DNA from: Gracilinanus agilis
Lineage: Eukaryota
Length of the DNA: 64,000 nucleotides
Direction of reading: 5' to 3'
Assembly: GCF_016433145.1 (NCBI RefSeq)
Contig: NC_058134.1
Span: 309,045,891-309,109,890 of the forward strand
The notes under the pieces were generated by a model. The model searched no databases, was not told where the DNA came from, and was given only the letters and a program-made list of their open reading frames with translations. Of this stretch, positions 8,563 through 63,017 are shown piece by piece (the first letter of the stretch is position 1; the number at the start of each line of letters is the position of its first letter). Made by a program: the position numbers and the translations under genes.

Positions 8563-8745
8563 GAGATGACTCGATGGTTAGAGCCAGAGATCGGAGGTCC
8601 TGGGTTCAGATTTGGCCTCAGACACTTCCTAGCTGGGTGACCCTGGACAAGTCACTTACCCCTCATTCTAGCCCTTGCTGCTCTTCTGTCTTGGAACTGA
8701 TACTTATTTTTGGTTCTAAGACAGAAGCGAAGGTGATTTTTTTTG
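8563..8745 (+). mobile_element. SINE1_Mdo-like SINE
   Basis: Core plus TTGGTTCTAAGACAGAAG tail. Confidence 0.85.
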
Positions 8746-11700
8746 TTTGTTTTTTAAGAATGCATGCCGTAGCTCAGGGGACTTGGCAGTTCCCAGGCCA
8801 GCAGTGCCTGATAGAGCAATTGCAGGATGGACCCCAGGACATTAGAACCGAGAGGAGGTTTGGGCTCTCGAATCTGAGGCTGAATTCCAGCCCTTGGTGA
8901 CTCCTGGGCAAATACAGGGCACGAGTGTTCCTCCCAGGGCTCTCCGCCATTCTGAGTTTGGGTGCCTTGTGGAGTAGCGGACAGAGGGCAAGAAGCCTGC
9001 CCTGCGAGGGAGGCCCGCCTTCGGGTAGCCTTTGGCTCCCTGGGCTGGGCAGTGCCCGGCCTTAGTTGGCCCCAGGCTCCCTCTTGAAGCCCTTCCTCTT
9101 CACTTCATTCCTGTGGCCTGTGAGCTGGTGCAAGTCCAGGAAGGCAGGTTTGCAAGTATCTCCCAAGTGCCTGGCTTTGAGCTATGCACTGGAGGATACA
9201 GAAAGCCAAAATGACCGTGTCCAGGACTCCTATTTTACAAATGAGGACATTGAGGCCCAAAGGGACTTGCCCGGCCTCGCTATGTGAGGGTAGATTGAGG
9301 GATCCCAGGTCCTTGATTCAGAGCTGACAGGACTTAAAAAGATGGCCTAGTTCAGCAGCCTCATTTATAAATGGGGAGGCTGAGGCCTCACCCCAGGAGG
9401 GGAGTGACGGCCTTGGTCCCCGAGGTTGTAAGGACGCAGCTCAGATTTTACCTTTGGGCATCAGTAGCTGGGGTGGCAGGGTTAGGTGGAGTCCCTTTCT
9501 GAGCATCCTTTTCCCTTAGAGTGGCCTGTGCTTTGTGCTTCTCTGAAGAGCCTCGAAGGGAAGGGTTGGCATTGGGGAAGTGGGGGTTCAGGTTCTTTCC
9601 TTCTGAACTTTTAGGGGTGTCCTGACTGGTGGCACGCTCCCACCAACCACATCTTAGCGGATGACGTGTAGAAACGACAAGTTAGGGCGTAGTGATTGGC
9701 TTCCCAAAGAACTCCCCGACGAAGGGCTTTTAAGACCGGCCTCCTCTCGTGGCTCTAAACTGAATCGCTTTGGAGCATGGATCTTTGCTCCTTGAGGGCA
9801 AGGCCCAAGTCTCCCTTCCGCGTCTCCTTCTCCTCTGGGGGCCTCATCACACATCAAAGGCACTTAACTATGTATCAGGGGCCAAAGGGCACCCACAAGG
9901 CATGCCTGGGCCTCCCAGGTTCCAGAGTCCCAATCTGAGCTCTAAGTGTCCAGAGAGTGACTATCCCTGCCAGCAGAGCCAGCCACATCACTGCAAGGGG
10001 GTCTGAGATGGAAGAGAAGGTTCCTCTGGACATCCAGATACTAGAGGACGGCCCACTGGTTGGGGAACAGCTGAACCAAAGTGAAGCGAAGAATTTGGAG
10101 AAACCTGGAAGTCTTACTTCTATGAATGGAGCAAACCAGGGCAGGAGGCCAGATGACTGCTGTGGCAGGCGTGGAAGGAACCTGAAGCCAAGTGCAGCCC
10201 AGAAGTCATCATGCCCACACAGGGCATCCTCCTGTGCCGTGCAGAGGCTCTGGTCAAGTGCTGGGCAGGTCATTCCCTGTTTGTTCTTCTAAGGGATGAC
10301 TGAGGCAGTGGGAAGGGCAGCATGTTGAGGAAAAGGGAAGGAACATAAAAACAAGACGGGCTCAGACTGTGGCACATGATCCCTCCATCTCCCCCGACGT
10401 TCCGCTGTCGGTTCTTGGAAGTCTGGAGAGCTGAGTGTGTTCTCAGAGCTCGAAGTTTCCTGCCTCTGCTCCAAGCTCCAGGCCAGCTACTACCATCTGC
10501 TGGCAGAACGCTGTCAAAAGAGGGTAATCGAGGGCAGCAGCTTCCTCATGGATCATCACAGGGGCCAGATAAGCTCAGTTGACTCAGTTAAGTGATAGAA
10601 TCATTTTTCTAGAGTTAAGGAAGGAACGTGGTTGGAGCAGCTGGACTCCTGGGGGTGGGGGGTGCTAAGGCCGGCTCGACAGCGGGGGCTTCGGCAGAGT
10701 TGAACGGTTGAGATTGTGGCGGTCGGCCGAGGAAGATCGGAGAGGGCAGCATGTAGTGGGTGACCCACTGAAGTGCTGCTAATTCGGTGTTTGGGCTCCC
10801 TGGAAGTGGAGAATGTCTTGTGAGACAGACAATGCTGAACCTGCTGAGCTTCTCTCATCCTAGGTAGGCTCAGGATACCTGTTGGGGTGTTGGTGACCCT
10901 TCTGAAACCGTGTGCTCCGAGCTCCCTCCATTGGACCCCTTTCCTGCAACGAGCAGGTCCTTCTCCGAAGGACCAACCTATTCCGGGGTTATTTCCCAGA
11001 GCCAGACCAGGCTGGTTTTGGCCAGCGTAGAACCCTCGTGCCTCTGGGTTGAGGGTAGCCAAGGTTCTCTTGGGACCGTAGTTTAGGGTTTTGTCCAGGT
11101 TCTAGGCAGCTGTTAACATTGTCCTTTTGGGGAAAATAACGTGTCGTGGGAAAGAACTGAATTCCGTAGCCTCTGCTAGATGGCTGCCACGGATAGGCTG
11201 AGCAAGGGTGCCAAAGGAGGATGCAATCTGGTTCCTGCCCACAGGAGTTCACCTGTGGGAATCGACCAGAGACCACCAGGCCCTCTGCGAGGGAACGAGC
11301 GCTCAGTCATGCAGAGACCCCAGAGGGGTTGGAGGAGGCTCCTCGGGGCAATCGGGTCTTGGGCAAAGCCTTCCCTACAGAAGGGTTCAATGGGAAAGCA
11401 CAGAACTGGACGGAAGCCAGGAGACCAGACTGGGTCTAGCGCAGTATAACCACGGGCAAGTCGTTTTGACTTGAGACCTCAGTTTCCTTGCCTGTAAAAT
11501 GATGTGGCTAGACAACACAGCAATCAGAAGGGACTTTGAGGTTCTCGTCCTCCAGGTCTTGGTGTGTAGCAGCTTGTTTTAAGTGCCCACCATGCGCCAG
11601 GCTCTGTGCCAAGTGCTGAGGGTAAAAAGAATAAAAACAAACAAAGGCAAAGCAGCCCCGGCTCTCAAGGAGCTCCCCGGCTCACGGGGTGGAGGGGAGG

Positions 11701-27137: not shown

Positions 27138-27527
27138 NNNNNNNNNNNNNNNNNNNNNNNNNNNNNNNNNNNNNNNNNNNNNNNNNNNNNNNNNNNNNNN
27201 NNNNNNNNNNNNNNNNNNNNNNNNNNNNNNNNNNNNNNNNNNNNNNNNNNNNNNNNNNNNNNNNNNNNNNNNNNNNNNNNNNNNNNNNNNNNNNNNNNNN
27301 NNNNNNNNNNNNNNNNNNNNNNNNNNNNNNNNNNNNNNNNNNNNNNNNNNNNNNNNNNNNNNNNNNNNNNNNNNNNNNNNNNNNNNNNNNNNNNNNNNNN
27401 NNNNNNNNNNNNNNNNNNNNNNNNNNNNNNNNNNNNNNNNNNNNNNNNNNNNNNNNNNNNNNNNNNNNNNNNNNNNNNNNNNNNNNNNNNNNNNNNNNNN
27501 NNNNNNNNNNNNNNNNNNNNNNNNNNN
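27138..27527. other. Assembly gap (390 N)
   Basis: Run of N directly after a G-tract. Confidence 0.99.
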
Positions 27528-31080: not shown

Positions 31081-32865
31081 GTACGGGGAGCAGGAGGTGG
31101 GGGAAGGTGGCCTTCAGGGCCTAAAGGCCAGGGGATGAGCTCCTATGGCAACAGAGCATGCGGAGGCAGGAGATTGGTCTTCAAATTCCACCCCTTAACC
31201 CCCTTGGCAGCCAGGCCTGGGACAAGCACCCATTAACTTCTCTGAGCCTCAGTTTTCTCATTTGTGCAATGGGGATGATCACACCTGCCATGCCTGACCC
31301 CACGAGCACTAGAGAAACAGAACCTGGGGCAGAGGGAGCTCTGCACCAAAGATTGGTGCCCATCTTTCCTCCCCGATTTTCGCCACGGGCAAAGCTCAGG
31401 ATGTGGCCCTGGCCGTTAATTAGGGGAGGAGACAGGACGCCCAAGAGGGAAGCCAGAGCCATCACTAAGCATCCTGGCCCCAGGGGCCCTGGAGAGATAG
31501 TCCAACTGGAGCAGTGCAGGGAGTCTGGAAAGGGGGGGACCAGCTCCTCTCTCCTCTTGCCAGACCCCTCTGGCCCCAAGCTCTACTCCCTTGCCCTCTC
31601 CCATGGCCCACCTTCCCCCAAGCCCAGAGGAAAAGTATGCCCTAAAGCTGGAGCAAGCCTCTGCGGGCCCACCCCAGTTAGGGCTTTGGCACAACAAAAG
31701 GGAAGGGTGCTGGCGAGGATTCTGGGGTGGAGGAGCTCAGCCGAAGCTGCAGGGGAAGGAAGGCCTTGAACAAATGGGGAGGATCTAAATGGATGGAGAG
31801 GAGCCTTGATTTAAAGCCAAGAGGGACCTCAGAGTTATTGAGCCAAAGGCCCTCACTTAACAAATGGGGAAACTGAGGCACAGCGGTCAGGTCACTTGCT
31901 CAAGGTAATGAGTGGCCGAGGCAGGATCTGAATCCAAGACTCTGAGTCGGCGAGCCTTGTGCTCTTCCACATTTCCAAGGGTTTCCTAAAGGAATCTCCA
32001 AGCCATAAGCTAAGGGTTTGGATTCACTCTGTCTTTCCTAGCCCAGACTATGAGAGCTGCCTTCATTCTTCCCATTACTCCCTTGCCCTCTGAAGGAGGA
32101 GCCGGAAGGTTCAAGGAGAGGGAGCAAAGACTAGGGAGAAGAGGGAGCTGGGGCGAGGAGAACAGTTCCAAGCATGTTGATCAGGTCCGGTCCTGAGCAG
32201 GACCAGGTGATCTCGGAGGCCCGTCCCTTCTCCCTCCAGTATTGGGGGCTCCCAAAGAGAAAAGTGGGGGAGAAGTAAGGGCGGGCCAGGAAGAGGACGA
32301 GGAGAGATCAGGAAGGCCAGTTCTTAGCCTTAGGTTTCTTGGACCATTGAAAATTTGCCAAGGACGGGGCTATTGGGAAACCCTGGAGCCCACAGCCAGC
32401 CTCCCTCCCTGCCCATTCCATCTGTTTTAAATAGGGTTCACATCACAAAAGCTCCCCTTCTCAACCATCTTTTGGCTTTGTTGTATAAAATGAGGGTTCC
32501 CATAATGCAAAGCAGGTGGGACTGAGACAGGAAGGAGCTTCGAGGCAGTAGGAAGCAGGTGGCTCAGTTTCCTCATCTGAAAATGGGCAAGTTGGACTTG
32601 TTAACAGGCTTCTAATCTTTAATCTCGTGACTTTGGCCCTTGGCTCAGACGCTTGCTAGCAGCGTGGCCTTGGGTTCAGTTTCTCTATCTCTAAAATGAG
32701 GGGGGTTGGACCTGGCTTTTAAGGCCCCTTCTAGCTCTAAATATGTGCTCCCTTGGGAGAACCAGTCAGAGGGGACCTGGGAGGTTGGGACATCTTCTCC
32801 CAGGCAGCGGCAGAGACTCCTGGGCCTCACATTCTCCCACCTTCACGCTTGCCTCTCTCATGCAG

Positions 32866-33044
32866 GCCGCCGGGTGTGCCTAGGGGAGCCACTGGCCAAG
32901 ATGGAACTGTTCCTCTTTTTCACTTGCCTGCTGCAGGATTTCTCCTTTGTCCTGCCTCCGGGGCACTCCAAGCCCAGTGACAAGGCAGAGGTCTCCTTTC
33001 TCTCAGCCCCACAGCCCTTCGAGCTCTGTGCAGTGCCCAGATAG
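32866..33044 (+). CDS. CYP2D6: CYP2D exon 9 (heme ligand, GRRVCLGE...ELCAVPR*)
   Basis: 179 nt including TAG; FxxGxxxCxG motif completed across the exon 8/9 junction. Confidence 0.96.
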
Positions 33045-33187
33045 GAGAGCTGCCTGCCTGCACAGGATGATCCCAACAACCCTGTCTCCACCATCACCTT
33101 TCACTGACCTGCCTCCTCTCCCCTTCTTTACCTGCATGACCTCCTCCTCCCCTCGGGCTAAGGGAGCACAGCTCTGACATTCCAGGG

Positions 33188-33193
33188 AATAAA
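33188..33193 (+). terminator. Probable CYP2D polyadenylation signal
   Basis: First AATAAA after the stop, about 145 nt downstream. Confidence 0.7.
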
Positions 33194-34592: not shown

Positions 34593-34598
34593 TTTATT
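34593..34598 (-). terminator. Polyadenylation signal of the unassigned minus-strand gene
   Basis: AATAAA on the minus strand 12 nt after the predicted TAA. Confidence 0.75.
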
Positions 34599-34610
34599 GA
34601 GCGGCCCTGC

Positions 34611-34714
34611 TTAGTGGTTCTGGGTCTTGGGGAGGTTGGGATCGGAGAACCAGTCTACCCAGAACCCTCGGAGGAGCTGTGTGACCCAGCTAGGCCCTGT
34701 GTCCATGGTGGGTT
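34611..34714 (-). CDS. Unassigned 8-exon gene, coding exon 8 (E)PTMDTGPSWVTQLLRGFWVDWFSDPNLPKTQNH*
   Basis: Acceptor cccaccttgccttttcag with CTGAC upstream; phase 1; open to TAA. Confidence 0.78.
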
Positions 34715-34898
34715 CTGAAAAGGCAAGGTGGGAGGCTCGTCAGCCCTGCTTTGGGGAGCCCAGGGAGGGGTCCTAGAGTGCAGCTCATGGGGTGCAGGAA
34801 CCCCCCCCCCGGGTGATGGTAAGGCCCGGGAGCCCTGGCGCCCCTCCCCAGTGCCCAGGAGAACTCATGGCCACGTGGGGTCGGGGTGCTGGCCTTAC

Positions 34899-34941
34899 CG
34901 GCTCCATAGACTGCAGCCTCCTTCTGCACCAGTTTATCTTC
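34899..34941 (-). CDS. Unassigned gene, coding exon 7 (EDKLVQKEAAVYGA)
   Basis: ctctttctttgtcccgcag| ... CCG|gtaagg; 43 nt; phase 0 to 1. Confidence 0.78.
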
Positions 34942-36042
34942 CTGCGGGACAAAGAAAGAGCCGGTTGAGGAAGCCGAGGCCTGGCTGGCCATGAGATTGC
35001 CACGTGGCCTTGGCCAAGTCACTTCCCCCTCCCCCAGGGAGGATGAGCATTGTGGGGGCACAGACAGACCTATCCCACCCTGCCAGCCTCTGCCCAGCCT
35101 GGCAACAATCTGACAAAAGGACATCAGTTGTGCGCTTGCGCTTGCTTTCCACACGTCGCCTCATCCAGGCGTGACTCTTCCCACATTCCACCGTCCTGCC
35201 AGCCCTCTCCAAAGACGCTCCATTTCTCATCTCGGTGCCTTTGCTCGCCTCTGCCTCAGTCTGTCTCTCCAGCTCCCTGGCCTCGGGGCCCAGCACGGGC
35301 CTGGCACGCAGCAGGAGCTGAACACCTTGTGAGGGTTTTCTCTGGGCCTCGCCAGATCTTCTGCTGGCGGGTGTTTTAGCTCCCCACGGCCCCCCCCTGC
35401 CAGTGATGGGGGCTGCCTCTGGGGGAGGTCTGGAACTTGCCAGAGACCTGGGTTCAAGCTCTTGCGCCTCAGCAGCAAGCAGTGTGACCTTAGTCAGGTC
35501 CCTTTCACTGTCTGGGCCTCAGTTTCTCTCGGCCTGAAACGGCCTCAAATCCCTGTGACCCCATGACCTGTGGAGTGTTTCCCCACAAGGCACCCCTCTT
35601 GGTGAGCAGGAAAGCCACCCGTTTCCCTTAAAACATAGAGAAATGGGGGTTCCTGGGCTCTGGGGTGGCGGGCTCCATTGCCGACCTTCATCCATCCATT
35701 CACAGACCCTGGCACAGACCAAGGGAAGCCTCAGCACGCTCCATGGAGGCCATCCTAGGCCCCAGGCCGAGGCCTCCCCAGTTCAGCAGAGCCTTAAGGC
35801 CCGGAGAGCCCCGAGAGGCCGGGGCCCCCTCCATCAGGAGAACTCTCCATGTCCTCCAACACAAACACCCCCCGCAGACGTCCGGTGCCCCCATTTTACA
35901 GCTGAGCACGCTGAGGCCCACAAAGGCATCAACAGGAACATCTGAACCCAGGCCTCCTGGCTCCAAATTCTCAGTGTGCCCTTTGTGTCTGCAGGAAGCC
36001 CTCCGGAGCCCCTGCTGCCTGCTGCCTGGGCTTCTCCCTCAC

Positions 36043-36162
36043 CTCCGGGGCTGGGCTCGGCTCCTCCTCTTTGCCCTTGAAGTCCTCCGGGTCCTTCGGG
36101 TCCTTTGGGTCCTCAGGAGCAGCCATCATTGGGCTCATGACTTTGGGAGTCCTCTGGGAAGG
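36043..36162 (-). CDS. Unassigned gene, coding exon 6 (PSQRTPKVMSPMMAAPEDPKDPKDPEDFKGKEEEPSPAPE)
   Basis: ctgacttcctctcag| ... GAG|gtgagg; 120 nt; phase 0/0. Confidence 0.78.
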
Positions 36163-36313
36163 CTGAGAGGAAGTCAGACAAGCCCTGAGGCCAGGCCAAG
36201 GTCTGAGGGCACCCCTCCCCCCCGCCCTGCCCTGAAAGGGAGTGAGTCTCCTGTCACCAGATGTGTCTCCGGGCGGCCGGAGGAGCATCGAGGAGCCTTA
36301 GGGTCCCCCTTAC

Positions 36314-36352
36314 CAGCTTCGCTCGCCATTTAAGGTTCTCGGTTCTGTGGTT
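36314..36352 (-). CDS. Unassigned gene, coding exon 5 (NHRTENLKWRAKL)
   Basis: ctgaccctttctgttctggctctccacag| ... CTG|gtaagg; 39 nt; phase 0/0. Confidence 0.75.
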
Positions 36353-36454
36353 CTGTGGAGAGCCAGAACAGAAAGGGTCAGAGAAGGGGGACCCCCCATG
36401 CACCCCCAAATCAAGCCCTCAGCCCTCCCCAGCGCCCCCCCTCCAGGCTCTTAC

Positions 36455-36517
36455 CCAGGTCACTGGATAGCACTTATCTTCAGGCCCCCACACAGGCCTC
36501 AAGGTCTCCCCTATGCA
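36455..36517 (-). CDS. Unassigned gene, coding exon 4 (CIGETLRPVWGPEDKCYPVTW)
   Basis: cttcccttctcttccccccag| ... TGG|gtaaga; 63 nt; only phase 0 is open. Confidence 0.75.
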
Positions 36518-36873
36518 CTGGGGGGAAGAGAAGGGAAGTAGGCCCAGGGCTGCAGGCGCCCCTTCCCTCCCAGAGGGTGGCCCCTTCCCCGCATCTCCAC
36601 AACCACCATGAGGGGCTTCCAAAAGAAATGTTTAAAAGGGGCCTTCAAGTCCAGCCTAAGATATTTCCTGGCTGAGTGTCCCTAGGCAAGTCACTTGCCC
36701 CCCACTACTTCACCCTGACTGCTCTCCTGCAACACAGACATGGCGGAGGGGCTGGACACTTCCTACGTGACCAAAGTCACTTTGCCTCAGTTTCTTCCTC
36801 TGTCTAATGGGGTAGTCACTGGGGCTGGTACCTGCCTTGCCTGACTGCCCGAGCAGAGGGACGCAGGCCCTAC

Positions 36874-36950
36874 CTGTGTGTCCATTAGGGTCCCGTGCTT
36901 ATCCTCAGAGGCTTTCTCGGGTCTTCCGTGGAAGAAATAATAGACCATGC
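36874..36950 (-). CDS. Unassigned gene, coding exon 3 ((G)MVYYFFHGRPEKASEDKHGTLMDTQ)
   Basis: ctgacccgcttttctccctctgccctggctgcag| ... CAG|gtaggg; 77 nt; phase 1 to 0. Confidence 0.78.
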
Positions 36951-37369
36951 CTGCAGCCAGGGCAGAGGGAGAAAAGCGGGTCAGGCCCTGGCATCTCGGG
37001 GCAGCTGGGAGGGAGCAAGAGGCCTCAGAGTCTGTCCCTGAGGCCCAGCGAGAGCCCCAGAGGAGGGAAAACCCTTGTCTCCTGCTGCCAAGCCTGCAGG
37101 CTCGCATTCGTGGCCAGGGCCTGCTGCGTGCCAGCTGTGCCCATCAAGGCCCACTGCCCGGGAGACAAAGCCAAGAGCCAGCCCCTTCGTGCCCTCCCAA
37201 AGCTTCCACTGTGGCAGGTGCTCTGGCCTGGACAAGGATGGGGCCGGCCCTGCGGCCACAACTGGAGCTCAAGGACCTCCTGGAGAGCCCATGCTTACGT
37301 TTTCAGGGGGTGCCTGATGCAAATCGGGTCTGGATCGATCGTGTGTTTATTTCTAGACTTTCCAATCAG

Positions 37370-37503
37370 AGGTCTTGGGTTCAGATCCAGCCTCAGACAC
37401 TTCCTAGCTGTGGGACCCTGGGCCAGTGCCTTAATTTAACCCCCTTGCCTGGCCCTTACCTCTCTGCTGCCCTGGAGCCCGTAGTCGCATGGAAGGTAAG
37501 AGG
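37370..37503 (+). mobile_element. SINE1_Mdo-like SINE
   Basis: CCTCAGACACTTCCTAGCTG core; GGAAGGTAAG tail. Confidence 0.75.
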
Positions 37504-37848
37504 GTCACGGAGGTATTGGGGGGGGGATGTTAAAATAGGAACAATGAAATATTGGTAGTGGAACGAGCGCCGAGTCGGAGGCAGAAGAGCTGCATTCAGC
37601 CTCAGCCCTGCCAATATTCGCTCCTGGAATGTCCTTAGACAAACATCTTGAGCCTCAGTCTCCCCCTCTGTGAAGTCACGTCGCTTCACCCCAAGGCCTT
37701 GGGGGCTCTCACGGCTCTACAGCCCCCCAGATGGGTCACCTTCCTGCTGGCCAGGACCACCCCCCATAGGACCACTCCAGGACCGGCCGAGCCACAGCAA
37801 GCCCCTGGTCCGGGCACCTGAGGGCGAGGGCCTTGGCGGCTTCCTCAC

Positions 37849-37892
37849 CTGCCAGTATAAAAAGCTGCATCACATACAGGGACTTGGAAACT
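37849..37892 (-). CDS. Unassigned gene, coding exon 2 ((R)VSKSLYVMQLFILA(G)), first half of predicted TM helix
   Basis: ctgaccgtcctttcttttccag| ... CAG|gtgagg; 44 nt; phase 2 to 1. Confidence 0.78.
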
Positions 37893-39133
37893 CTGGAAAA
37901 GAAAGGACGGTCAGTGGAGTCTGGCCACTCCCAAACCAGAACTGCCCGAAGTGGGGACACGGCCTCTTCACTTAGGGGACAAGGGACTTGCCCAAGGTCA
38001 CACAGGTCCCCGCGTCCTGCACTCTTTGGCTGGATCCCCCAAATCACCCCCCAGGGAGGGATGCAGATGACCCCAGTGGTGGGAGGAGTCAGAGCTCTGG
38101 AGACCCCCCCCCAAAAGTATCTGGGGGGGAATTCATAGCCCTGGGGCGTCCCCCCTCCCCTGGCCCATCTGGCTCTGCCCAGGTCCTCATGCTCCCATGC
38201 AGCCCAGCCTCAGCACTTTGAGTTTGCTTTCTTTCTTCCTGTCCCTTCCATCTTAGAATTTCTCAGTCTTGTGGATCAGTTCCGTGGCAGAAGAGTTGTC
38301 AGGGCTGGGCAGTGGGGGGTGCCCGAGGCCAGACTGGAACCCAGAACCTCTCCTCTCCAGGCCTGATTCTCCATCCACTGAGCCACCGAGCTGCCCCCTT
38401 GCTTCAAGGTTCCCAGATCCAGATGCTGCCTCTGGCAGGAAGTCTGCCCTGATTCTTCAGGTCCCTCCCCACCCCCTCCCAAGGGGCCCCATGAAGCACT
38501 TTGGTGTGTAGAATGGGAGCTCCGAGAGGGAACAGCATGAAAGATGGCCCCAGCCATGGGACCTCAGTCTGGTCCCCTCCTCATCTCCCCCTCGGTAAAG
38601 CTTGTGGCTTTGGACTTGGGCTTTCCATGATGCTGTCCTGGTCACGGGGCCAGGCATACAGGAAGTGGTGATTTGCCTCTCGTCCGGGACAGGGCTGTGC
38701 TGGCCCCTACCTTGGGCAGCTAGGCATGGTCTTCTCTTGCACCCCGGCCCTGCCTCACCGCTGTCCAGGAACTTGCTAGACCCAGGCCCCCTCCCCCTTG
38801 GGCTTAGCAGAGGCCTTAACCCGGGCCTCCTCTTCACGGCCTTAGACCAGACCTTTGAGCTCATCTCACCCAACCTCTTCTTTAACAGATGAGGAAGCTG
38901 GTTTTCTTAAGGTTACACAGTAAGTGGCAGATTTAAACCCAGACCCTGAGTTAGTCTTTTCCATGTACCTCCTCACCCTGCGCAACATCAGGCTGGGGGA
39001 GCCCATTCAAGGAAGTTCTGCCATCTTCCTCATCACACCCACTCCCACTTTGTGAGCCTCTAGGCCCACAGGCGGGTAGAGTGTACACACACACCCCCAT
39101 GCCCACGCCTGGAAGGTGGCACCCATACTCTAC

Positions 39134-39165
39134 CTTTCTCTCGGGCAACACAAAATCAGCACCAT
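39134..39165 (-). CDS. Unassigned gene, coding exon 1 (MVLILCCPRE(R)); exon begins at 39172
   Basis: ctgacatctctcctttcctccctag|ACTGAAG-ATG-G (A at -3, G at +4); AAG|gtagag donor; phase 2. Confidence 0.72.
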
Positions 39166-39309
39166 CTTCAGTCTAGGGAGGAAAGGAGAGATGTCAGGGC
39201 CTCTCAGGAGATCCGGGGTCTGGGCGCAGGACCTCCAGATTCAGAGCAATGAGAGCCCAGGCTAGTCCAGCATCTAAGCACCCCTTTACACTTAAAAATC
39301 ACCATGGAA

Positions 39310-39478
39310 GGGACAGCTGGGGGCCTAGAGTCAAATCTGGCCTCAGTCACTTCCTAGCTGGGTGACCCTGGGCAAGTCACTTAATCCCCATAGCCTAGCC
39401 CTCACCCTCACCTTTGTTCTGCCTTGGAGCCAGTAATCCACAGGATTGATTCTAAGGCATATGGTAAGGATTTAAAAA
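39310..39478 (+). mobile_element. SINE1_Mdo-like SINE
   Basis: Core plus GATTGATTCTAAGGC...GGTAAGGATTTAAAAA tail. Confidence 0.8.
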
Positions 39479-40911
39479 GGAAAAAGAGTGGAAACTTGCC
39501 GTTCTGGGGAATGACATCACGGGGCATACCCTCATTGGGAAGATGAGTAAACCGGGGCCTGGGAAGGGACTTGTCTGGGTAGAAGGGCTCCAGACGCCAC
39601 TGGCCACCCTGTCTCCGTTTCAGGACGTCTGAGCAGAGTCACCTGTCCTCAAGGTTCTCTCTGAGCACCCCCCACCCCGAGGGCTGGCTAACGCCAGGAT
39701 GCAAAGGGCTGGGGGCCCTGTTGGGACAGAAATCTCTCCTTCCTCCCCATTAGGGCTTGGCCTTTGGGGGCTTCTCACCCTGGGCTGGGATCTCAGTAAC
39801 CTCAGCAGCTGCAGACTATCCCTCAATCATGTCAGCTCCGGCACTGACGGGCCGCCTGGCTCCTTGTCTCTTCTCTGGCTCTGGTCCTAGGCTTGAGCAC
39901 TGGCGCGGGACAGGACCATATCCAAACGCAAGCCCCCCAGATGAGAGATCCTCGCGGCCAGCTGTCCACTGGCCCGGCCTTTGGGGTCTGCTCGGTGCTG
40001 CTGCCTTCCCAGGAAGGGGCCTCGGGCCTGAGTGTGACATCACATTAAGGGAGCCTTTATGACGGGGCAGGATCATCACCGGCCTAGGACAGGGGGCACC
40101 CCAATGGGGAAGTGGCCAAAGTGCCAGGGGCACCCGTCTGGATCACAGGGAGTCAGGGGGCTCTGTGATAAACATGGGCCATACACAGGCGGCAGCGTCC
40201 CAGCCCACGAGGGGCCCCCAGGCTAGGGGGAGACGTGTGCAGGCAGCTCTGTGCAAACTAGGCACAGCAAGAGGAATTGGAGTGCTATGGGCCGAGGAAA
40301 CGGGCTGGGCCTGAGAGAAGGGCACCCAGCCCCTCAGCCCCTACCCTGGTTGGTCCCAGGGGAACAACGTTCCAATTCCCCGTGTTTCAATCACACCCAG
40401 AATAAATTGGACCCCGAGATTGAGAGCCAGAAGCTGGGGTCTTGGAGGTTAGTGGGTCCAGCTCCCTCATTTTACAGACACAAGCTGAGGCCCTGGGAAG
40501 ATCCTAGTCAGAGCTGGAAGGGACCATCTGAGAGACCATCCATTTTTCAGATGAAGAAACTGAGGTTCAAAGAAATTAAGTGACTTGGTCAAGGTCACAC
40601 AACTAGTAGAGATCTGCTCCTGAGCCAGAGTCCTTTTCACTGAACCAAGCTGGGTCCTTAATGTGTCCAAAGATATACCAGCAGAGAAGTAGCCAAGTCA
40701 GAATTTGAACCCAGGTTCTGAGGCTCCAAATCCACATTCTCCAAAGCAGTCTCCAAGTGAGTATAGGCCAGAGGCCAAAGCCAGTAGGTCTGGGAGTCCC
40801 AAGAAGACAAGCTCCAAGAGCCTGAGACAGAAACCAGAGGCTAAGAAAGGATGCAGAGCAAGCAGGAAAGCTGGGGAAGTTACCAGGTGAATTTATTCTA
40901 TCATTTAGTTG

Positions 40912-41049
40912 GTTAAACCCTTACCTTCTGCCACTGGGGATAAGTGACTCGCTTAAGGTCACCCAGCTAGGAAGTGTCTGAGGTCACATCTGAACCCAGG
41001 GCCTCCTGACTCTAGGCCTGGCGCTCTATCCAGAGCCACCCAGCTGCCT
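40912..41049 (-). mobile_element. SINE1_Mdo-like SINE (internally deleted)
   Basis: TTAAACCCTTACCTTCTG tail to CCACCCAGCTGCCTC head, reversed. Confidence 0.8.
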
Positions 41050-42440
41050 CTCGAGAAGCCAACAGCCCATCAGAGAGACCTTCAGTCTCATGTTGGGACT
41101 GGATTTCGGGCCAATGACCGATTGCTCGCCAAGCTTTCCTGGCTGGGAGGGGGAGTCTGACCTGTGGGCATAACCATCGGTCTGGCTGTTGAGCTTGGCA
41201 GCCAGCTAGATGGGGAAAGGTCAAGTCAGATCTCTTCTGTGGATAAAGATACCCGAAGCCTCCGGAGCTTAGTGAAGTGACTTGCCTGAGGTCAGACAGC
41301 CCAGAAGAGCCAAGGCTAACGTGCCAGCGTTCTGCCCTGCCCCCCGCCCCTCCAAGGTTGGGTCCCTTCTTTCCTGAAAGAGACTCGATTGGCCCAAGAG
41401 GATGAAGGCTCCTGAAAACTGGAGAGGAGGGCCCTGGAAGAGGCGTCCAGGAGAGACCCAGAAGGGTTCCGGCCAAGGCGGGCCTGTGTAAGGAGGGGCG
41501 GCCACATCGGGCCATGAGAGCCCCCAGGAATGGGTGCCTCGGAGCTTGTGATCCTGAGAAGGCAGGAAGAGAGAGGTTTGAGGTCAGGGAACAGGAGTGT
41601 CTTCCATGCCTGCCGAGCTGAGCTTCACACTCCTCTGGGACCTCCAGAAGGCACATGAAGGCTGGCCAGGAGGCTCCCATGCAGTGGGGGAACCCGGAGA
41701 AGAGAGCCAGAGAGGGCGAGGGAGGGAGGGTGGCAGGATAGAACCACACACGCACTGGCCACACACAGACAAACACGCTCCAGGCACACAGCAGCATTTA
41801 CTAAGCCTGTGCCACCGGGTGACCGCCACTGCCCTGAGCCCCGAAACAAGACGGCCCCCACAAGGAGACTGTCTCCCTGGAGAGAAGGATGGACCCCTGG
41901 AAACAGGGAAGTTAAGGGGGGGCTCATAAAACGGGGTCCCAGGCAGGGCAGACCCCAGGGAGGCGCACAAGCCCCACAGGCTTCGCTCACTTCCACCTAC
42001 AACATGGTGTCCCTGGGCACAACGGGGGAGGAGGGGTCCTCTAGCTCCGGCTCTTGGGGTTTAGCGTTGCCAGGGAGCCCCGGGGACTCGAGCTCGGAAC
42101 GGGGCACCTGGGGGGGCCTGGTCGGAGAGGCAAAGCCTGACGGGGAGGGGAGGAGGCCCCTGCCTGGGTCTGGGGTCCCCAGGCGTCCCTGGCTGAGTGC
42201 TGCTCGGTGTCTGGGAGACACCCCAGGGCCTTGGTTTTCCCATTTGTAAAAGGAGGGCTGGGCCCGTCCTCGGGCCCCTCCCTAGGCCTCAGTTTCCCCA
42301 TCTGTAGGCGCATCTACACTCCCGTGGGCGGCGCCCAATTCCCCACCCCGAGCCCAGGAGCCAGAAGAGAGTGACGCCCCGGCTGGGCGGCCCGAGCACA
42401 CCCTCACGCCCCAACGCCTTTTGGGTAGTGCCTGAGCCCT

Positions 42441-42669
42441 TGCGCGTGCGCACGCGTCTCTAGGCTCCCTTTCCCCACCCCCCAGGACCTCGAACCAATC
42501 AGAGAGCTCCGATGCCACCCGGCATCCCATCGCCCTGGGAAGCTCACCGGCTTCGGCCAACGGCCAATCAGAGAGCCCCGAGCCGTCTCTCTTTCCGGCC
42601 TCGCATCCGCAGCGGCCAATGACCGAGCTGGGCGGGGCGTTTCGGCGGCGGCTGCGCCAAGATGGCGGC
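42441..42669 (+). promoter_or_regulatory. NDUFA6 promoter: NRF1-like site, three CCAAT boxes, GC box, YY1 motif over the start codon
   Basis: TGCGCGTGCGCA 42441-42452; CCAAT at 42495, 42564, 42616; GGGCGGGGC 42630-42638; AAGATGGCGGC 42659-42669. Motif matches only. Confidence 0.75.
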
Positions 42670-42800
42670 TAGCGGAGTGGGCCGCGCAGCTGCTGCCGTG
42701 GGCACGTCCGTAAAGCCGGTGTTCAGTCGGGACCTGACCGAGGCCAAGCGGCGGGTGCGGGAGCTGTACCGGGCCTGGTATCGCGAGGTGCCCACCACGG
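42662..42800 (+). CDS. NDUFA6: NDUFA6 (complex I B14, LYR family) exon 1
   Basis: MAASGVG...[15 protein letters not shown] with LYR motif; 139 nt; G|gtgagg. Confidence 0.97.
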
Positions 42801-43156
42801 GTGAGGAGCCGCGGCAAGCGGCGCTCTCGGTCAAGGTCGTGACTCCCCCTGCCCCCGCGGCGGCGGCTCTTAAAGGGCCAGGCCCAGAGGAGCCGTGCCC
42901 AAGGGGAAGGGACTGAGGCGGGCTCGCGCGGGCCAAGGTTAGGGTGGTGTCAGCGGCCCACGAAGCCCCGGTGCCCTGCAGGAGAGTCCTGGTTGGGCCG
43001 CCCCTTCGTACGGCTTGGTCTTTTTTGCGCCAAGCTCTGCAGTGCCTGGCTCAGGGCCGCGCGCAGAGGCGGGTCTGAGCGGTCCAAGCTAGTGCCCGCC
43101 CCACCGTGGCCCTTGGTGGCCGGCTCCCAGCACTGACCCATGACTCTTCTCCCCAG

Positions 43157-43272
43157 TGCACCTTTTCCAGCTGGACATCTCGGTGAAGCAGGGCCGCGAC
43201 AAGGTCCGAGAAATGTTCCTGAAGAACGCCCACGTCACGGACCCGCGGGTGGTCGACCTTCTGGTCATTAAG
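43157..43272 (+). CDS. NDUFA6: NDUFA6 exon 2
   Basis: [39 protein letters not shown]; 116 nt. Confidence 0.97.
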
Positions 43273-44047
43273 GTAACCCGAGACCTTGGCCCTGCAAGGG
43301 CGGCAGGCCATACTCACCCCCACTCTTGGTAGGGCAGGCGGGCTGGGACCGGCTGTCTCTGTGTCTCCAGCTCTCCCGGCCCTTTGCAGATGTAATCTAA
43401 AGACTCACCGCCACCCTGGGAAGTAGCTGCTACTCCTGCGCCCATCTGACAGATGAGGAAGCTGAGGCACAGTTATGTGACTTGCTCAGGGCCCGCAGAG
43501 TAGGTGTCTGAGGCCAGGGCTTCCTGGTTCGGGCCTGATGCTTTGGCACAATGTGGTGCCTCAGAATATCCCAAATAACCCTGAAGAGAATAACTACAAA
43601 CTAGTTGGAAACAAAGTGGTTTCTGGGGGATCTGCACAGGCTTCCTGTGTGACTGGGACATGTCACTGTCCCTGCCACACACACACAGGGAATGGCCAGT
43701 GCCAACCCATGGAGGCACACAGGCTTGGGTACATCCCTGAGGAGACCTGTTAGGGGCCGGAGTAACCTCCAAAAAGGCAGCCCCTGAGGAAGCGGGGGGA
43801 GTTGGTCACCTCCACTCTTGGGCGGAAGACGACCCGGAGCCCACGGAAGAGGGCAGTTAGGAGGAAAGAGAGTGAGGCATGCTATGTTGTTGGACCCACG
43901 TTGAGTTGATGTCTCCAGGGCTGAAAGGCTGGAGGGGCAGCTGGTAACCGAACCTCACCTTCTAGGCTGCTGCCTTTCTCCCCAGGGGTCCTGCCTCTAG
44001 CCATATGTGAGGGGCCTGGAGACTGAAAGTCTTTGCTCCTTGTGCAG

Positions 44048-62517: not shown

Positions 62518-63017
62518 NNNNNNNNNNNNNNNNNNNNNNNNNNNNNNNNNNNNNNNNNNNNNNNNNNNNNNNNNNNNNNNNNNNNNNNNNNNNNNNNNNN
62601 NNNNNNNNNNNNNNNNNNNNNNNNNNNNNNNNNNNNNNNNNNNNNNNNNNNNNNNNNNNNNNNNNNNNNNNNNNNNNNNNNNNNNNNNNNNNNNNNNNNN
62701 NNNNNNNNNNNNNNNNNNNNNNNNNNNNNNNNNNNNNNNNNNNNNNNNNNNNNNNNNNNNNNNNNNNNNNNNNNNNNNNNNNNNNNNNNNNNNNNNNNNN
62801 NNNNNNNNNNNNNNNNNNNNNNNNNNNNNNNNNNNNNNNNNNNNNNNNNNNNNNNNNNNNNNNNNNNNNNNNNNNNNNNNNNNNNNNNNNNNNNNNNNNN
62901 NNNNNNNNNNNNNNNNNNNNNNNNNNNNNNNNNNNNNNNNNNNNNNNNNNNNNNNNNNNNNNNNNNNNNNNNNNNNNNNNNNNNNNNNNNNNNNNNNNNN
63001 NNNNNNNNNNNNNNNNN
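62518..63017. other. Assembly gap (500 N)
   Basis: Run of N. Confidence 0.99.

Follow-up and report, generated by a model that had tools for sequence, protein, structure and literature searches.

Long non-coding RNAs (lncRNAs) can originate from protein-coding genes, the precedent being Lnx3, a coding gene that turned into Xist. Divergent transcripts (DTs) issue from bidirectional CpG-island promoters, and the HGNC rule for this class is a head-to-head arrangement within ~2 kb. The human lncRNA NDUFA6-DT, which we take to be transcribed divergently from the NDUFA6 promoter and to end tail-to-tail near CYP2D6, presumably lies on the same strand as the gene described here. This gene occupies positions 34593 to ~40200, minus strand, of a 64,000-nucleotide stretch of the opossum Gracilinanus agilis (contig NC_058134.1; the window, which always means the stretch at its full length). 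Comparison with other mammals indicates that it is very probably the didelphid-like marsupial orthologue of an old therian protein-coding gene, and it is set below beside lncRNAs that are fossils of coding genes. The NDUFA6-CYP2D-TCF20 synteny reaches birds (PMC3786927).

A protein-coding gene model on the minus strand

Reconstruction from splice sites and open reading frames joins eight coding exons (39172-34611, minus strand) into a single frame of 173 codons. AG and GT flanks are present at every coding exon, a pyrimidine tract precedes most of the acceptors, and a poly(A) signal, AATAAA at 34598-34593, lies 13 nucleotides (nt) past the end of the frame. Counting a non-coding first exon, the gene has at least nine exons, one non-coding and eight coding, with one of the coding exons optional, and the product would measure ~133-173 residues. 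The exons are as follows.

39779-40212, minus strand: exon 1, non-coding, with the predicted core promoter; donor CAGG/GTGAG at 39779/39778; placed by marsupial conservation and by the splice alignment of the eutherian cDNA contig L005
39134-39172, minus strand: exon 2, the start-codon exon; ATG at 39165-39163; encodes the head M-V-L-I-L-C-C-P-R-E-R; AG acceptor and GT donor
37849-37892, minus strand: exon 3, first half of the membrane helix; splice sites; also alignable to whale DNA
36874-36950, minus strand: exon 4, second half of the membrane helix (G-M-V-Y-Y-F-F) and a linker; acceptor CTGCAG/GC at 36951/36950
36455-36517, minus strand: exon 5, encodes GETLRPVWGPEDKCYPVT, with the most conserved motif of the family, GETLRPVWG..DKCYPVT
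36314-36352, minus strand: exon 6, a short basic stretch; splice sites and marsupial conservation
36043-36162, minus strand: exon 7, optional, 40 residues, acidic and proline-rich; contains a 9-bp tandem repeat
34899-34941, minus strand: exon 8, 43 nt; skipping it shifts the frame; skipped in the cDNA contig L004
34593-34714, minus strand: exon 9, the last exon; tryptophan (Trp)-rich helix and PKTQNH ending; coding 34714-34611, with TAA at 34613-34611

Rfam and transfer RNA scans of the interval were empty. One short interspersed repeat has copies in three introns (39321-39400, 37369-37454 and 36644-36716), and it finds many matches in the koala and devil loci.

Orthologues in marsupials and eutherians

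Searches were run exon by exon and then with the Tasmanian devil protein and a seven-sequence profile, the last of which returned 145 proteins, of which the best 120 are listed. Exon 9 alone, with its 34 residues, retrieved the devil protein G3WHN0_SARHA (P0002, 133 residues) at an E value of 1.9e-9 and with 74% identity over 34 residues, and this protein matches the window model exon for exon, exon 7 aside. Exon 7, when searched alone within its open frame, gave no match; it is included in koala isoform X1 and in devil P0006 and lacking in devil G3WHN0 and in bear isoform X7.

The best 120 of the 145 matches span two marsupials, devil and koala, and ten eutherian orders. Listed among them are Carnivora (dogs, cats, bears, panda, seals, mustelids, hyaenas and meerkat), Cetartiodactyla (whales, cattle, sheep, goat, deer, pig, camels and hippopotamus), Perissodactyla (horses), many bats (Chiroptera), hedgehog (Eulipotyphla), elephant (Afrotheria), sloth (Xenarthra), Lagomorpha (rabbit, hare and pika) and some Rodentia (ground squirrel, degu and Fukomys). 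All named matches in this set are "uncharacterized" or "hypothetical", and a few are either without a source name or called "unnamed protein product". For the product of the window itself, the protein collections searched yielded no entry. There is no Pfam domain for the family, a PDB sequence search found no solved relative, and literature searches with motif strings and LOC numbers returned nothing beyond one passing mention, in which differential expression in kidney and liver is given for pig LOC110260835.

The family to which we compare the window gene comprises G3WHN0_SARHA and the products of LOC144454902 (koala), LOC111097639 (dog), LOC103674067 (polar bear) and LOC110260835 (pig). Common to these and to the window gene are the exon pattern, the head, the membrane helix, the motif GETLRPVWG..DKCYPVT, the C-terminal Trp helix, the PKTQNH ending, the optional acidic exon and a tail-to-tail placement beside CYP2D. 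The copies differ in that exon 6 is less basic and the acidic exon shorter in marsupials than in eutherians. As judged from this comparison, what the window contains is not a "new marsupial gene" but a so far unannotated member of a family that is in the databases and unstudied.

Constraint on the reading frame

Koala (L001) and devil (L006) retain the full set of eight coding exons together with the splice sites of these and the stop codon. At the DNA level exon 2 is 87% identical to devil, with its splice sites kept in both koala and devil and its first 11 residues the same as those of G3WHN0; exon 5 is 87% identical to devil, 81% to whale and 72% to dog; and exon 9 is 77-79% identical to devil and koala and 69-75% identical to whale and dog. 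Four opossum exons (2, 3, 5 and 9) can be aligned to whale DNA and two (5 and 9) to dog DNA. The indels of exon 7 amount to 9 + 3 nt relative to koala and to 12 nt in total (1+8+3) relative to devil, so that the frame is kept. The tandem repeat of this exon (9 bp, 3.6 copies, 36082-36113), which is read as PKDPKDPED, is the site of in-frame indels relative to koala and devil.

The ratio of nonsynonymous to synonymous substitution rates (dN/dS) is 0.41 between the window gene and koala and likewise 0.41 between it and devil; it is 0.34 between dog and whale and 0.29-0.38 between koala and the eutherians. The dS values to the two marsupials are nearly equal (0.44 and 0.46), which fits a didelphid as outgroup to koala plus devil. 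In an alignment of 30 species 12 columns are invariant and a further 24 nearly so. The residues R, P, W, G, K, C and Y of the exon 5 motif are invariant in the 30 species, and across the wider family RP.WG is found in 111 of 122 proteins and KCY in 116 of 122. We conclude from these comparisons that the minus-strand gene is a genuine protein-coding gene under moderate purifying selection.

Rabbit, hare and pika (P0113, P0114, P0118 and P0120, counting Fukomys) have an intact frame in which the Trp residues of the C-terminal helix are replaced, and the Fukomys copy is divergent and has an unrelated tail. The loss of Trp residues in lagomorphs and the tail of Fukomys suggest relaxed constraint on the gene in parts of Glires.

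Predicted product

Exons 2-4 of the window encode an N-terminal head (M-x4-CC/GC-x-RER) and one membrane helix (..FILAG.VYY.F) and align with 30 orthologues. Sites that are invariant or nearly invariant are the RER before the helix, FILAG..YY.F within it, RP.WG and KCY of exon 5, and L..W..W of the C-terminal helix. An AlphaFold2 model of the koala orthologue, built on the 30-species alignment, contains helices only at residues 11-33, where the predicted local distance difference test score (pLDDT) reaches up to 91, and at residues 145-157; outside these two helices the koala model is disordered. Over the whole model the mean pLDDT is 56. The protein would then begin with a short Cys-Cys/RER head that leads into a single membrane helix; after this would come the motif GETLRPVWG..DKCYPVT, a charged and disordered middle part and, at the C-terminus, a Trp-rich helix. 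The distribution of charges on either side of the membrane helix favours a predicted orientation in which the N-terminus faces the cytosol. Our guess, by analogy, is that the protein could be a small accessory subunit, binding a partner through the membrane helix and the amphipathic C-terminal helix.

Neighbouring genes and the age of the slot

The window gene is flanked by two genes on the opposite strand.

42662-42787, plus strand: NDUFA6 exon 1; ATG at 42662; open reading frame MAASGVGR...; 83% identical to koala exon 1
32706-33193, plus strand: last exon and poly(A) signal of CYP2D; stop at 33042-33044, AATAAA at 33188-33193

The arrangement described in the earlier note, with the gene on the strand opposite to NDUFA6 and ending tail-to-tail with CYP2D, is borne out: the AATAAA of the gene (34598-34593, minus) faces that of CYP2D (33188-33193, plus), the two poly(A) signals being ~1.4 kb apart, and at its other end the minus-strand gene stands head-to-head with NDUFA6, whose exon 1 begins at 42662 on the plus strand. 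A CpG island with a CpG observed/expected ratio of 0.85-1.06 surrounds the start of NDUFA6 (~42200-43400). Elsewhere in the window there are two runs of N, one of 390 bases (27138-27527) and one of 500 bases (62518-63017).

The order in koala and devil is NDUFA6(-) / gene(+) / cytochrome P450 (P450)(-), the NDUFA6 neighbour being recognized by its match to Complex1_LYR. In dog and Rice's whale the gene(+) is followed 1.5 kb on by a P450(-), again tail-to-tail; NDUFA6 exon 1 was not found within the 10 kb upstream flank in dog or whale. Since the two marsupial and the two eutherian loci agree in P450 neighbour and orientation, the slot at the CYP2D 3' end is, as these loci read, older than the split between marsupials and eutherians, its NDUFA6 side being confirmed only in the marsupial loci.

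First exon, promoter and the candidate donor at 42548

The strongest non-coding conservation of the interval is a block at 40212-39779, with 73% identity to koala over 459 nt and 66% to devil. Immediately past the donor CAGG/GT(G/A)AG, which all three marsupials retain, the conservation ends. Sequence homologous to the block is found at 8650-8990 of dog L002, at 9984-10314 of whale L003 and in the first conserved exon of the cDNA contig L005, and the splice point of L005 aligns with the 39779 donor. At its core stand GTCATAAAG (40063-40055) and TGATGTCACAC (40042-40032), with GTCA(T/C)AAAG followed by TGATGTCACAC. This pair of elements looks like a putative TATA-like box beside a site resembling a cyclic AMP response element (CRE). 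Three marsupials, dog, whale and the eutherian cDNA all carry the succession GTCATAAAG ... TGATGTCACAC with little or no change, and L005 reads through it from further upstream.

With a CpG observed/expected ratio of 0.3-0.5 the block lies outside the CpG island. From the NDUFA6 ATG it is separated by 2.5-2.9 kb in the window and by more in the other two marsupials (koala 4.6 kb, devil 3.5 kb). To go by this conservation, the most likely origin of the transcript is its own first exon, ~2.5-2.9 kb away from where NDUFA6 starts, rather than the CpG island.

It had been proposed earlier that the gene is linked to the NDUFA6 promoter through a strong donor there.

42541-42556, minus strand: donor CCG/GTGAGC at 42548/42547, inside the NDUFA6 CpG island

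A donor of this form is indeed present at 42548/42547, but its GT is missing at the aligned columns of koala (GGGGACGC) and devil (CCGCACGC), and it is one of five comparable ..G/GTRAG donor-like sites on this strand within 3.5 kb, where ~2 would be expected by chance on a rough estimate from base composition. A stop codon lies in frame six codons upstream of it, so that an exon ending there would be non-coding at best. We consider that the 42548 donor is probably not an exon end of the minus-strand gene. The conserved donor at 39779 and the unconserved one at 42548 together point to a first exon independent of the NDUFA6 promoter, and the position of that exon outside the CpG island, 2.5-4.6 kb from NDUFA6, weakens the proposed promoter link.

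The likeness to DT-class transcripts, which arise at bidirectional CpG-island promoters, consists in the head-to-head arrangement with NDUFA6 and in conserved CCAAT boxes, a typical feature of such promoters; unlike them, the window gene has its conserved first exon outside the CpG island and at a distance of 2.5-2.9 kb (koala 4.6 kb, devil 3.5 kb). Within the NDUFA6 promoter (42440-42625, read on the minus strand), opossum, koala and devil share three CCAAT boxes (ATTGG) and a GCGTGCGCACGCGC-like palindrome with little or no change, and the sequence between them drifts.

Eutherian cDNA contigs

Two spliced contigs of cDNA type from the Logan collection, L004 and L005, represent eutherian orthologues. 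L004 contains a poly(A) signal and runs into sequencing adapter; at 900-1000 it skips the 43-nt exon 8, which leaves the last exon read out of frame. L005 (540-1036) lacks exon 6 as well as the start-codon exon, and it still contains an intron. A human origin of the two contigs was considered and rejected: each product occurs on one contig only, and the identity to dog and whale is 65-88% for both.

Relation to human NDUFA6-DT

A table in a human study (PMC6722498) puts an NDUFA6-AS1 single-nucleotide polymorphism (SNP) at chr22:42121918, between a SNP in the NDUFA6 3' untranslated region (42085845) and one in intron 6 of CYP2D6 (42127803), at ~6 kb from this CYP2D6 intron-6 marker (PMC6722498). 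Described cases of lncRNAs that are fossils of coding genes (Hezroni et al. 2017, PMC5577775; Wen et al. 2023, PMC10195156) resemble the present one in having coding orthologues in outgroups and in relatives. Here, no primate protein stands among the best 120 of 145 matches, and a human lncRNA occupies the same slot (PMC6722498). The defining evidence for such fossils is residual similarity to coding exons, and NDUFA6-DT is likened to them by its slot. A literature search for NDUFA6-DT together with ribosome profiling (Ribo-seq) found nothing.

One of the two origins suggested in the earlier note was that an ancestral coding gene decayed into the eutherian lncRNA. The ancestry in this proposal stands, coding orthologues being old, but its scope does not, for most eutherian orders keep the coding gene. 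Any conversion would therefore be lineage-specific, with primates and perhaps mouse and rat as candidates. For primates, mouse and rat, from which no coding orthologue appears among the best 120 of 145 matches, disablement or loss of the gene is probable, and a lncRNA across the same slot, such as human NDUFA6-DT, may be what is left. None of the orthologues among the best 120 of 145 carries a gene name; that no name was inherited fits, we infer, the absence of a named human or mouse orthologue. Our tentative reading, which we hold with slightly less than even confidence, is that human NDUFA6-DT may be a transcribed relic of a gene disabled on the primate lineage, with independent erosion elsewhere in Euarchontoglires, as the lagomorph Trp helix, the Fukomys tail and the lack of a mouse or rat copy among the matches seen would suggest.

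Discussion

Several observations weigh against the reading of the locus as a translated gene with its own promoter and a primate relic. The one sequencing run found for this stretch is DNA-like, and no RNA run turned up. Non-productive isoforms are many (L004, L005 and several Gnomon isoforms), and protein-level evidence for the product is nil. The absence of primate, mouse and rat proteins is an absence from the best 120 of the 145 matches. Finally, L005 has an extra 5' exon of ~190 nt (L005:1-190) with a GC content of 66% and a CpG observed/expected ratio of 1.15, spliced onto the conserved exon 1. This exon found no place in the marsupial intervals or in the dog and whale flanks (8.6-10 kb upstream), where its alignment scores equalled those of shuffled sequence. 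Such a 5' exon of CpG-island type suggests that in eutherians a distal CpG-island promoter, possibly that of NDUFA6, may also feed the gene.

That the frame is not translated at all, the locus being a conserved non-coding RNA whose spurious open reading frame was spread by annotation pipelines, we regard as improbable. It would accord with the lack of proteomic or Ribo-seq evidence and of a Pfam family, with the many frame-breaking isoforms and with a model that is largely disordered (mean pLDDT 56). Against it stand a dN/dS of 0.29-0.41 across ~160 million years, frame-preserving indels, conserved start and stop codons, and a clustering of the invariant residues in the membrane helix and two motifs. 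The other origin suggested in the earlier note, a marsupial gene born de novo from a divergent NDUFA6 transcript, has next to no probability left. Only the head-to-head orientation and the donor-like site at 42548 speak for it, against which stand orthologues with the same motifs in ten eutherian orders and the exon pattern and P450 neighbour that dog and whale share with the opossum, whose exons can be aligned to whale (2, 3, 5, 9) and dog (5, 9). Orthologues in the same tail-to-tail slot in dog and whale refute a marsupial novelty.

A further explanation accepts the coding gene and denies the relic: NDUFA6-DT would be unrelated to the gene by descent, a by-product of the bidirectional NDUFA6 promoter, and the gene would have been deleted or eroded in primates and left no transcribed trace. 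We see a real though minor chance that this is so. In marsupials transcription seems to begin at a first exon belonging to the gene itself, outside the CpG island, the 42548 donor is unconserved, and dog and whale have more than 10 kb between NDUFA6 and the start-codon exon. NDUFA6-AS1, moreover, is not in the available part of the supplementary tables of Hezroni et al. 2017 (PMC5577775). Against these points, the cDNA of the eutherian coding gene begins in an upstream exon of CpG-island type, as expected if the distal promoter already served the gene. Slot, strand and tail-to-tail end by CYP2D also all match between the two, the strand of NDUFA6-DT being taken as assumed at the outset.

If the reading of NDUFA6-DT as a relic of the coding gene is true, the locus would record a datable and repeated transition from coding gene to lncRNA beside the pharmacogene CYP2D6. 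The coding family also makes it possible to put to a concrete test the idea that NDUFA6-DT, much cited as a cancer-biomarker lncRNA, is a gene fossil. The class of coding-to-lncRNA transitions is already documented, so a positive case would add a clean example and no new principle. For the family itself, the comparisons point to an unnamed and unstudied protein with no described function that has stayed for ~160 million years in one fixed genomic slot. It is apparently missing as a coding gene from the lineages most used in the laboratory, human, mouse and rat, and as a small membrane protein it is open to study in dog, pig, cow and opossum.

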